A DNA stretch of 64,000 bases. Origin: Klebsormidium nitens (Eukaryota; Plantae; Klebsormidiophyceae). Below, one piece after another: positions 30 through 3,574 of this stretch; position 1 is the stretch's first letter, and the number at the start of each line of letters is the position of its first letter. The notes beneath the pieces were generated by a model. It made no database searches. It saw nothing but the letters and a program-made list of their open reading frames with translations, and had not been told where the DNA came from. The position numbers were made by a program, and so were the translations under genes. The stretch spans positions 62,001-126,000 of the forward strand of contig DF237036.1 of assembly GCA_000708835.1 (NCBI GenBank). Direction: 5' to 3'.

Positions 30-1290
30 ATTGCAATATCAAGCAGGTGTCATTGTCCAGTCGCATCGCCCTCTCCTAATGGCATTTCAGATGATGCACT
101 TTGGCGAGATTGTGCTGGCCCTTTCGCAATGTCCACGTAGCAGTCGAGAAGGGCACAAAGAAGAAGAGGAGGCTAGCGTAGTTTCCACCGGAATCTTCGC
201 TTCGAAAACGTCAAACGAAAGAGGACTATACGAAATAGTCAAGGAGAGGCCAAGAGACGACCATCGCCTGTTCTCCAACAACAGCCGTGTGTAGCTTTCC
301 GCAGCTTCTTGGTAACTCTCCAATGTCAGTGCATGCTAGTTAAACTGAGCTAGCAATGCTGCACCCTTTGCGTGAAACCTCAATGACGAACCACCACCTC
401 GAACGCCAGAAAAGCTGGATCAGAGAATGAAGAACTGAAGGAGACTCTTGCCTGTACTTTGGAAGAAGTCTCTTGTATTAGATGTCCGTCGCCTCTTGAT
501 GGTGGCTTCAAAGAGAGTGCATGCTGGCAAATTTAGCTTATGCTTGCTCGCACCGCTTCAGGAGATAATACTCTGATCCCGGGACTGAAACAGAAGAGCG
601 AATGATCCGTGGAGAAAGACTTGCCTGTTCTCCAACAATAGCCGTTTGTAGATGTCGGTCGCCTCTTGGTAGTGGCTCCCCAGATAGTGCACACTGGCAA
701 GACTCAACAAGTACGTGCTCGTCCCTTTCAACGAATAATACTTTGCCGAGCCACGATCACTTCTCAGGAGTGAATCAGCAGAATGGACCTCAGAAGTGAA
801 TCAGCGAAATGGACCTCCACGATCCGTGAGGAGACTTGCCTCTTTTCTCAATGAGCAATCTTTGTAGGTGTCCTTCGCCTCTTGATGGTGGCTTCGTAGA
901 GTGCACGCTGGCAAACTCAGCAGATACCCGCTCGCGCCCTTTCAGAAGACAACACTCCGATCCCGGGACTGAAGCGGGAGAACAAAGAAACCATGAAGAG
1001 AGACTTGCCTGTTCTCTAAAAGTATTCTCTTGTAGATGTCCGTCGCGTCTTGGTAGTGGCTCCGCAGATAGTGCACGCTGGCAGGACTCGGCTGAAACTT
1101 GCTCGAACCCTTTCAACGAATAGTACAACTGCCGACTCACGAATCTGTTCCAGATGTGAACGAGCAGAATGGACAATTCCAGAGGAGACTTGCCTGTTCT
1201 CCAGAAGAAGTCTCTTGTACTTGTCCGTCGTTTCCTTGATAGTGGCTCCGTAGATATTGCGCGCTGACCAAAATGAGCTTGTACTTGCAC
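30..1290 (-). repeat. Tandem array of seven degenerate copies (about 170-215 bp period) of the 3' half and 5' splice site of IFT56 exon 1384-1579, inside the downstream intron
   Basis: The motif (a/t)cttgcctg, which is the reverse complement of the exon-end/donor junction, recurs near 446, 619, 834, 1003 and 1188 and in the real exon at 1378. Each is followed by about 85 bp similar to the exon end. More decayed copies lie at about 262-330 and 60-115. Spacers alternate in a dimer of about 385 bp (ctc[t/c]gatcccgggactgaa near 571 and 955; ccctttcaacgaata near 723 and 1108). Confidence 0.9.
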
Positions 1291-1383
1291 GCCCCCTTCG
1301 AATGACTTCAACGACAAAGCACGAAAGGAACGCGCAACGGAACCAGATGGCAGATGGCAGATGGCACCCTGAACGAGACTTGC

Positions 1384-3574
1384 CTGTTTTCTAGAAGAAG
1401 TCTCTTGTAGATGTCCGTCGCCTCTTGATAGTGGCTCCGCAGATAATGCACACTGGCCAAACTGAGCTGGTCTTCCAGGCTGTCCGTCAGTTGCTGGTGG
1501 AACTGCATCAGCTTCGCCTCATCGCCCGACTTATGTGCCAAGTGAAAGAGAAGCCGCGTTTGAAGAGGGTTCTTCGGACCTGCAAAGCAAAGTACTTGGA
1601 TCCTTACATCCTTACATCCTACATCATTGCGGTTATTTCTAACATCGCTTGCTGTCAAGAATTGTTAGTATCTGTCAGTTCCTGGCGAAACTGCATCAGC
1701 TTCGCCTCATCACCCGACTTATGCGCCAAGTGGAACAACAAGCGCGTCTGGAGGGGCTTCTTGGGCCCTGTGATTCTGTAGATCCAGAAGATGGGAATTC
1801 TAGACAACAATCTTCTTTTTGGTCTAAGATCCAGCTTCGCTTACTCGAAGTCTGCATCAAGAGCAGATTCTTGGGGCCTGTGATTGAAACGTCTGGATCA
1901 ATCAGTGGCAAGAAACTCAGTGAACAAGAAGTCCACAATGCCGTCGAAAAACCAAGGCAAATGTTCGCTTCGCACACGCACTACTCTAAACCTCCCTACC
2001 TAAACAATCCGACCGTCCCAGCACTGTCTTCGCGTTGTTCGCTGAGCTTAGGTTTCTATTTATAATTCAAAGCGGTGAATAGAGGGTAAGGGCTATGGTG
2101 CGATATGTGATTGCAAACTTGATTGAATTGAAAGATTTGCATCAGCGTCGCCTCCCTGCGTGACTTGTCAAACGAGAGAGGCGTCTGGAAGATCTTTTAG
2201 GGCTCGCAAAACGACAGGGCTCGGGTATTGTAAGTCGTCACCACCTTCCGCAGACGCTCAAAGCTCGGGCTGTGACGACTTTCATGGAGGGGGTGACGTT
2301 CTGAAAGTTGTTGTCCGACTTGTGCACAGAAAGGAACAAAGATGCCTTCTATTCGCAGCGTTCTTGAGTCCAAAAACAAAAAGGTTCCGCTATAGTAAGA
2401 TCATCACGCCCCTCTGATGCAGCCAATTTCTCTCCCATGCTGATTCCCGTTCGTCTTTTCTGCTTTGCCTTTCTCTCCCTTGAGCAGTCAGATCCAAGCC
2501 AGAACCTCCCTCACCTTTCAGCGCTTCTTCCTCCGCCTCCTTATAACGCCCCATGTGGTATAAGCAGGCAGCCGCATAGCTATGGTACATCCCATCTGCG
2601 TGTGGCTGCTCAGCCAGCTCCTTATAGATGGCCAGCGCCTTATCGTGTAACCCATAGTGGAAGTAGCTGTACGCTAACCACTCTGAGGTCTTTGGATCCT
2701 TCTTGTCAGCCTGCAGTTACATGGAACGGGTGGTTGAGAAAAGCTGAGATTTTCTAGAGAGCGCAAATTTGAAAAGCACTTCAGCTTGGCTGTCAGCGAG
2801 ACGCATTGATTCCAATGGACTCCTTCCAAACAGGCTGCACAAGAGCGTTCAAGTCCGAAGAAGCTGGGTTTTGGCACTTCAATGTAAGAGCGTTAACTGC
2901 CTGTGTCAACCTGAGAAACTTTGGTGTTTAACCAAGCCGGTCAATGATCTTCTCATTAAAGTTGCGACCATGCCAATGCTGTGTAAGGAGGGAGAGCATT
3001 ACCAAATTGGCCTCCGAACAGGTCCTGATGTCTCCACTGACGAGCCCGGTATGCCTCAGGCGGTTCTCAATAGGAAAATTTTGATCAAGCTGGTCAAGGT
3101 CTACCCCAAATTTGGGAGCAAGCAATCAGTCGGAACCGTCACTGAAGTTGGCTGTCACCAAGACATTCTGACGGAAATCAAGTTCGATTAATCAGCGCTA
3201 CTTCACAAGCCAGTAGCTAGTGGGGTTACATGCAAAGATTTCAAGTCCTTCTAAGCAAGGGAAAGCTTCCTTCTACAGCCTATTCCGAGCACCCTGCTAC
3301 TTACAGTATTGTCTAATTCCAATTGGCTACAATCAGCTACAAACCGACCAGTCTAGATTGACTTCGCACCAAAAGTCGGAGGTTCCTTGGAAGAAGCTGT
3401 AATGGTAAGCTTGAAGGATCAGCTCACCAGTCGGCGGAACTCCAAAAGTGCGACAGCCCCTACATAGTCCCGCTTTTGCAGCAGCTCCTCGAGCTCTGGG
3501 ACCTTTGGCTTGGAGTCACGCTGCGTTTTATCTGTCTGCGCACCCGCCGTGCTCCTTGCTCTAGAGAGTATCAT
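1384..3574 (-). CDS. IFT56: Intraflagellar transport protein 56 / TTC26 (DYF-13), 5' part; exons 3428-3574, 2515-2710, 1384-1579; the gene continues beyond the left edge
   Basis: Spliced translation MILSRARSTAG...PELEELLQKRDYVGAVALLEFRRL|ADKKDPKTSEWLAYSYFHYG...[76 protein letters not shown] matches the conserved TTC26 N-terminus as I recall it (RLLFHLAHK, DQLSLASxHYxRSHYQEAxDIYKR). Phases are consistent (0, 1, 2). The donor after 1384 is CAG|GCAAGT (GC-AG intron). Confidence 0.95.
1670..1890 (-). repeat. Copy of the acceptor and 5' half of IFT56 exon 1384-1579 in the upstream intron (1670-1767), plus a short second copy near 1865-1885
   Basis: The reverse strand reads ATCACAG|GG CCC AAG AAG CCC CTC CAG ACG CGC..., giving [33 protein letters not shown] and a stop shortly after. 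The real exon gives [33 protein letters not shown]. Confidence 0.92.

Follow-up and report, generated by a model that had tools for sequence, protein, structure and literature searches.

Half-exon copies in the introns of the Klebsormidium nitens IFT56 gene bear signs of protein-level selection until recently

A 64,000-nucleotide stretch of Klebsormidium nitens DNA (contig DF237036.1, positions 62,001 to 126,000, assembly GCA_000708835.1; referred to as the window and numbered from its first letter) has its left end within the IFT56/TTC26 gene, which lies on the minus strand, as do all IFT56 features described here. The introns on either side of the third exon of this gene carry partial copies of that exon. 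In two of these half-exon copies, Xe1 and E4, the differences from the working exon are silent far beyond chance; a third copy, E2, is marginal in this respect, and copies in a PKG gene of the same window show the bias mildly. The data support the view that protein-level selection acted on Xe1 and E4 for long and until recently, and that these two copies, and less clearly E2, are now dead, their decay having just begun. The working exon and the copies are as follows.

1383 to 1579, minus strand: working exon 3 of IFT56 (F), from RNA contigs and translation; 65 residues, PKNPLQ...KRLLLENR
1671 to 1770, minus strand: Xe1, frame-keeping 5′-half copy with its own acceptor, CACAG|G; 82% identical to 1483-1582
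1830 to 1885, minus strand: Xe2, older, decayed 5′-half copy with an internal deletion
2120 to 2212, minus strand: Xe3, oldest 5′-half copy, heavily decayed (54% identity, many gaps)
1193 to 1283, minus strand: E1, 3′-half copy closest to the exon; frameshifted, with the codon version of the working exon
1008 to 1098, minus strand: E2, frame-keeping 3′-half copy; 28 codons (1008-1091) with 13 base differences and 4 amino-acid changes
839 to 929, minus strand: E3, 3′-half copy broken by indels
624 to 714, minus strand: E4, frame-keeping 3′-half copy; 28 codons at 624-707, donor GCAAGT intact
451 to 541, minus strand: E5, 3′-half copy broken by indels and a stop
267 to 357, minus strand: E6, old, decayed copy; 3′ end CGG CTG TTG TTG GAG, as in the codon version of E4, donor decayed to GCGATG
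60 to 150, minus strand: E7, a further, very decayed 3′-half copy, recognized by eye and outside the statistical tests

Silent and replacement differences

E4 and exon 3 can be compared over 28 codons, in which 17 of the 84 bases differ. These differences make 11 silent codons and one replacement (R to G); none falls on a second codon position, and 11 of the 28 third positions are changed. Of the six first-position differences, five are Leu/Arg switches that leave the residue unchanged, where 7% would be expected to be silent by chance (P = 1e-5). Moreover, transversions account for 5 of the 11 third-position differences and the codon table shows base changes in both directions, which argues that base-specific mutability does not explain the silent bias. 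Mutation bias could not give rise to the first-position switches, so protein-level selection must have acted on E4. Xe1, compared with the exon over 1671-1767, has 14 silent and three replacement codons (N to K, H to R, and Q to E) and a ratio of replacement to silent differences per site (pN/pS) of 0.12; by the Nei-Gojobori method, Xe1 and E4 lie at 0.08-0.12. The original prediction had drawn attention to these two copies, which it placed at 619-710 and 1670-1767, and its codon counts for both (11 silent and 1 replacement; 14 and 3) were reproduced exactly.

As a null model, the copy was allowed to mutate freely while the exon took silent changes only, and 5000 simulations were run to the observed base distance. 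On average they gave 9-10 amino-acid changes. The E4 value was reached in none of the 5000 runs (P < 2e-4) and the Xe1 value in about 1 in 5000 (P about 2e-4), while E2 (1008-1091) is borderline (P 0.02-0.06). The significance of the silent bias survives correction for about 16 examined copies.

These results bear directly on the simplest account, plain neutral decay of local duplicates, in which the bias would be due to chance, to a high mutability of third positions or to a choice of the most convincing copies. Such decay would be in keeping with only two or three of about ten IFT56 copies being extreme, with the mildness of the PKG effect and with third positions that are rich in G+C. It is nevertheless contradicted by the simulation, by the Leu/Arg switches, by the transversions and two-way changes at third positions in E4, and by a significance that persists after the correction. 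Neutral decay is thus close to refuted, and we leave it hardly any probability; the RNA contigs and the orthologue alignment support the alignments and the frame on which this judgment is based.

An intron-flank yardstick and two classes of copy

The intron-derived part of the copied units provides a neutral yardstick. Whole units were aligned, and under local duplication followed by decay, replacement sites are expected to change at half the flank rate. The broken copies E1, E3, and E5 fit this expectation, with 26 replacements against 22.0 expected (E1, 7 and 8.2; E3, 8 and 7.2; E5, 11 and 6.6), and this fit validates the null model. In contrast, the frame-keeping copies Xe1, E2, and E4 together carry 8 replacements where at least 28.6 are expected (P = 6e-6), and E4 alone carries 1 where at least 8.8 are expected. 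The difference is also seen between neighbors in the array, as E4 has one change versus 11 in E3 (8 replacements and three indels; P = 0.003).

The PKG gene is located at 17950-25400 of the window, on the minus strand. Its silent-to-replacement counts, 4:1 at 19737, 3:0 at 18090, and 4:2 at 20180, agree with those reported before, and the PKG copies that had been called neutral do look neutral. Pooled, the PKG copies have a silent excess of only about 1.7-fold. With the yardstick, the copies nearest the exon show 18 replacements against 35.1 expected (P = 0.001), and those one or two units farther away show 28 against 25.7, which fits the null model. Judged from sequence, the PKG copies look like a weaker form of the IFT56 pattern. 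Since both the broken IFT56 copies and the farther PKG copies match the expectation, the yardstick works, and the copies fall into two classes, one neutral and one recently alive. The proposal that the half-exons were under protein-level selection until recently is therefore supported, both by the simulation, which rejects neutrality for Xe1 and E4, and by the deficit of replacements.

In the deviant class, that is, the frame-keeping IFT56 copies and the nearest PKG copies, silent divergence equals or exceeds the divergence of the intron flanks. This feature rules out a recent overwrite by the live exon, which would have lowered silent and flank divergence together. Exon-specific hypermutation was rejected as well, as divergence in the intron flanks matches that at third positions and the broken copies are consistent with equal rates.

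The order of the copies is also informative. Replacement decay increases from E4 (1.5%) through Xe1 (4%) and E2 (about 6-7%) to E1, E3, and E5 (11-18%), and the silent distance from the exon follows the reverse order, being greatest for E4. With opposite rank orders, the copies cannot be successive local snapshots of a single evolving exon, at any rates. The copies also differ in the codon version at the 3′ end. The live exon and the oldest, dead copies E1, E3, and E5 have in common AAG AGA CTT CTT CTN GAR, E4 and E6 have AAA/ACA CGG CTR TTG TTG GAG, and E2 is intermediate. An apparent third version in E3 turned out to be an artifact of alignment around an indel.

Silent divergence amounts to about 40% of third positions. 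Among four-fold sites, 12 of 14 are changed at the block edges versus 3 of 12 in the block centers (p = 0.004), so that the centers are more alike than the edges, and gene conversion with the exon seems to occur. Conversion accounts for the mosaic, not for the silent bias: it resets silent and replacement sites alike and was rejected as the cause on this reasoning. The same holds for selection on the copies as repair templates (conversion donors), where the conversion rate needed would erase the silent divergence too.

RNA evidence and the present state of the copies

The RNA evidence consists of assembled Logan contigs from four public runs, in which rare isoforms can be missed. Upstream of exon 3, it defines two further exons.

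3427 to 4088, minus strand: IFT56 exon 1 with 5′ untranslated region, from RNA contigs of four runs; start codon ATG at 3574
2513 to 2709, minus strand: IFT56 exon 2; joints 2709/3427 and 1577/2513 in 4/4 runs

A GC-type donor, CAG|GCAAGT, directly follows exon 3, and RNA contigs that pass 1383 continue outside the window, reading DFLALNVYVA, the next IFT56 exon. Apart from this exit from exon 3, the two joints listed above are the only ones, and no RNA joint in the assembled contigs of the four runs touches any copy. Splicing of the copies into mRNA, which the original prediction had named as the alternative account of the constraint, therefore finds no support in these contigs. Where low-depth contigs cover E2, E4, and E5, they are colinear with the genomic sequence, and the donors of E4 and E2 lie within them unspliced. 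The upstream intron with Xe1 (1580-2512) has zero contig coverage in the four runs, and Xe1 itself meets a stop five codons beyond the end of homology and has no usable donor.

In the GC-AG intron with the 3′-half copies (1-1382 of the window), unspliced RNA cover is present in 4/4 runs at ~7-35% of exon depth. Intron 2 (1580-2512) is without such cover, and intron 1 is covered in one run only. The cover of the copy-bearing intron may reflect slow splicing or retention, this intron holding many decoy donors.

The few replacements in the frame-keeping copies fall at positions that hardly vary. H27R in Xe1 alters a histidine kept by 182 of 183 full-length orthologues, R47G in E4 alters an arginine kept by 181 of 183, and L38P, L40P, and E52D in E2 are at near-invariant residues of the same set. 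Together with the lack of RNA joints, these replacements indicate that selection of the IFT56 type on the copies is now off.

In either of two protein searches, the best 120 matches listed included no full-length IFT56 with a Klebsormidium label and none with more than 65% identity to the first 180 residues of this gene. The IFT56 protein of this gene may be missing or mis-modelled in public annotation.

Layout of the copies

In the intron downstream of exon 3, E1-E6 and probably E7 form a head-to-tail array of about 185-bp units, repeating every 170-216 bp. Each 3′-half (Y) unit consists of the last ~92 nt of exon 3, the donor and a spacer of ~90 nt. Overlying the single-unit period is a two-unit period of 375-386 bp, and the units form two subtypes, E2, E4, and E6 versus the indel-broken E1, E3, and E5. 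The units straddle the splice junction head to tail, as do junction duplicates (echo repeats). In the upstream intron, Xe1, Xe2, and Xe3 are copies of the acceptor and the first ~97 nt of the exon; Xe1 and Xe2 have in common the acceptor flank AATCACAG|G and the codon CCC. These 5′-half (X) copies stop at exon position 1483 and the Y copies begin at ~1474, which makes them near-complementary halves. The X copies carry an acceptor only. The Y copies carry a donor only, and it is preceded by an internal GAG|T as the sole AG.

Every spacer ends in the motif TGAAAGGGnnCGAGCA, which is the left junction common to all Y units, with a start point near 1474. The spacer ends are without exon homology upstream of CAGCTCAG. 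Taken together, the shared motif and the end of homology indicate that the Y unit begins near 1474 and that all units derive from one junction, and a single shared junction indicates that the array grew by homologous out-of-register exchange. One-sided recombination with a non-homologous junction in each event, as had been proposed for the origin of the copies, is at variance with this. As a separate observation, TGAAAGGGnnCGAGCA, just ahead of each 3′-half copy (90-1300 of the window), is kept better than the rest of the spacer, old units included.

Two other readings were rejected. The drop in conservation at AG|T was considered as the sign of an acceptor and set aside, because the spacer ends have no exon homology upstream of CAGCTCAG; the drop is hence the edge of a repeat unit. 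An old exon split by the insertion of the current exon was considered as well, the halves being complementary and equally diverged. It fails because the Y-unit junction TGAAAGGGnnCGAGCA means that the left edge of E4 is not a unique breakpoint.

The frame-keeping copies E2, E4, and E6 lie in the genomic frame of the exon, as the distances of their 3′ ends (1008, 624, and 267) from 1383 are 375, 759, and 1116 nt, all multiples of 3, and the broken copies lie out of this frame. The common frame may be due to chance (about 1 in 27), and stop codons between the copies exclude read-through. Between Xe1 and the live acceptor, at 1600-1625, a tandem 8-mer (GTAAGGAT) repeated 3.4 times on the minus strand gives three to four consensus-like GT donors consecutively.

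Origin of the recently alive copies

Our suggestion is that Xe1 and E4 (and, with less clarity, E2) spent the greater part of their separate history within a diverged working version of IFT56 and were moved by homologous unequal exchange within an array already in place; we give this a probability of roughly 40%. In this model, the intron would already have held a head-to-tail array of ~185-bp units, each joining half an exon to the edge of an intron. By unequal crossing-over or gene conversion, a diverged working gene version would have undergone out-of-register homologous exchange with this array, and the half exon that had worked in that version, along with the adjoining intron edge, would have been left in the array as an extra unit, to decay from then on. 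Xe1, E4, and the ancestor common to E2, E4, and E6 would thus once have been part of a working exon in the diverged version. Later conversion with the live exon would have drawn the block centers closer together, with silent differences staying at saturation in the edges. It is the junction common to the units that favors unequal homologous exchange over one-sided illegitimate recombination.

For the donor version, a deeply diverged haplotype, a homeologue and a lost paralogue are all candidates. The original prediction had considered displaced former exon halves, or pieces of divergent alleles or homeologues. Of its reasoning, protein-level selection until recently is supported. The divergence is too deep for ordinary alleles, so that the donor would have to be a homeologue, a lost paralogue or a lineage that had diverged very far.

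Several observations weigh against this origin. The donor version was not seen. The protein collection was searched with the exon peptide, with a full-length IFT56 protein and with a profile into which exon peptides of this gene had been built, and cluster representatives and JGI metagenome contigs were searched as well; no relative above 65% protein identity came up, and identity did not exceed 84% across the exon or 65% across the first 180 residues. Silent divergence is near saturation at the block edges, far beyond normal allelic variation. This alga is generally regarded as haploid and asexual. Transfer of whole two-copy segments predicts that the dead partner copies are diverged to the level of the silent sites, and they are only about 20% diverged. 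Finally, all counts come from blocks of <100 nt, in which clustered differences are possibly not independent events.

Among the alternatives, the intact copies might still be used in place, at a low level or in some life stage, and be kept by purifying selection. E2 and E4 would then serve as 78-nt cassette exons, in frame and bounded by AG|T and CAG|GC, and Xe1 an alternative acceptor giving a truncated protein. The 78-nt length is indeed in frame and the GCAAGT donors are intact; the copy-bearing intron is present at 7-35% of exon RNA depth, with none in intron 2; Logan contigs omit rare isoforms; and IFT genes serve flagella, the RNA runs perhaps coming from vegetative filaments. On the other hand, there are no joints to the copies and the E4 and E2 donors are crossed unspliced. 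The acceptors of E2 and E4 would be GAG|T, the weakest type, and Xe1 lacks a donor, RNA cover and an open frame for more than five codons past the homology. In addition, H27R, R47G, L38P, and L40P replace near-invariant residues, and the same bias is found in 5′-side copies of other genes, which cannot be cassettes. We regard use in place as improbable. The live exon and its junction might instead have been fast at silent and intron sites, through hypermutation or through retuning of splice signals against the decoys, with all copies local and near-frozen as snapshots. This would account for a silent excess at or above flank divergence, and the pyrimidine tract of the live acceptor, TTTGCTTTGCAG, is better than AATCACAG of Xe1 and Xe2. 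However, the broken and the farther copies fit equal rates (26 vs 22.0 and 28 vs 25.7), leaving no room for faster change at the live junction, and replacement decay and silent distance order the copies oppositely. The dead copies E1, E3, and E5 already have the codon version of the live exon, and some silent changes are derived in the lineage of the copy (e.g., codon 10, which is TTG in Xe1 and CTC in both the exon and Xe3). Moreover, the differences cluster at both block edges, including mid-exon, and not just near the junction. A fast live junction is about as unlikely as use of the copies in place.

It can also be asked whether exon 3 was formerly two exons, X and Y, with selected tandem alternatives, of which intron loss fused one pair and stranded the others. 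The near-complementary ends of the X (1483) and Y (~1474) copies would be in line with such a history, as would gene fragments of some other algae that begin near EDQLSLAA and suggest an exon boundary nearby. Yet no donor follows Xe1, and the internal GAG|T is the sole acceptor that precedes the Y copies. Homology between exon and copies extends about 9 nt (CAGCTCAG) to the left of this AG, which means that the unit boundary does not coincide with a splice site. PKG and other genes with the same pattern would require many such histories, and we consider a split exon less likely still than the two preceding alternatives.

Exchange with a diverged working version, as preferred above, raises a broader possibility, which we hold more tentatively and regard as rather doubtful: the intact half-exons may be traces left by recombination among working genome versions that had diverged deeply (by hybridization, a parasexual cycle or a long-diverged second haplotype). 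Conserved exons would then anchor the exchanges, which would take place in the splice-junction repeat arrays and be recorded there. If this were true, the exchange could be dated and mapped from "recently alive" copies genome-wide. Copies of exon edges in introns are expected to be neutral junk. A long record of selection in them implies either that a second, diverged gene version was once co-resident and recombining, or that intron copies are constrained in some way not yet understood. A diverged version in the same nucleus would be direct sequence evidence, mappable genome-wide, of genetic exchange in a streptophyte alga without known sex. Either way, the neutral and the recently alive classes provide a testable handle on the origin of junction arrays, for which the IFT56 locus is an unusually strong case, with a neutral control in the same array and evidence of death from both RNA and residues.

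Relation to known systems

A full-text literature search found no description of such intron copies. Silent cassettes or pseudogene donors are kept by gene conversion in some systems, and homology-facilitated illegitimate recombination occurs in bacteria. As in silent-cassette systems, unexpressed partial copies here exchange with an expressed gene, and block centers are homogenized while edges are not. Unlike silent cassettes, the IFT56 copies give no sign of useful variation, and conversion alone cannot yield silent-only differences. The single junction shared by the IFT56 units sets them apart from homology-facilitated illegitimate recombination. Tandemly duplicated, mutually exclusive exons were reportedly described by Kondrashov and Koonin in 2001 and by Letunic et al. 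in 2002. The likeness to these lies in tandem, exon-derived copies that diverge mainly at silent sites, between introns that are free to diverge. The IFT56 copies differ from them in that they are half exons with one splice site each rather than complete exons with acceptor and donor, in that near-invariant residues are replaced, and in that no alternative inclusion is seen in the assembled contigs of the four runs.

Tandem genomic duplication is a known route to intron gain or growth (PMC3265369, PMC4974935, PMC2891723). There, as here, a duplication that spans an exon-intron boundary leaves exon-derived sequence within an intron. In those accounts, the copy is fresh and local and neutral decay is expected, whereas the recently alive IFT56 copies apparently come from another, long-selected version.

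A gene fragment of another organism also ends at ...LLDNR, which suggests that the intron position after exon 3 may be old.

Other features of the window

The only long open reading frames in the window are at 42130-44196 (minus strand, 688 aa) and 39871-40851 (plus strand, 326 aa). G+C content is high (0.575) and GC skew strong (-0.25) in the stretch that contains the former, which may be a mobile element. Throughout 46000-64000 (18 kb), the AT skew is +0.11 to +0.20, as if this were one long one-strand feature.

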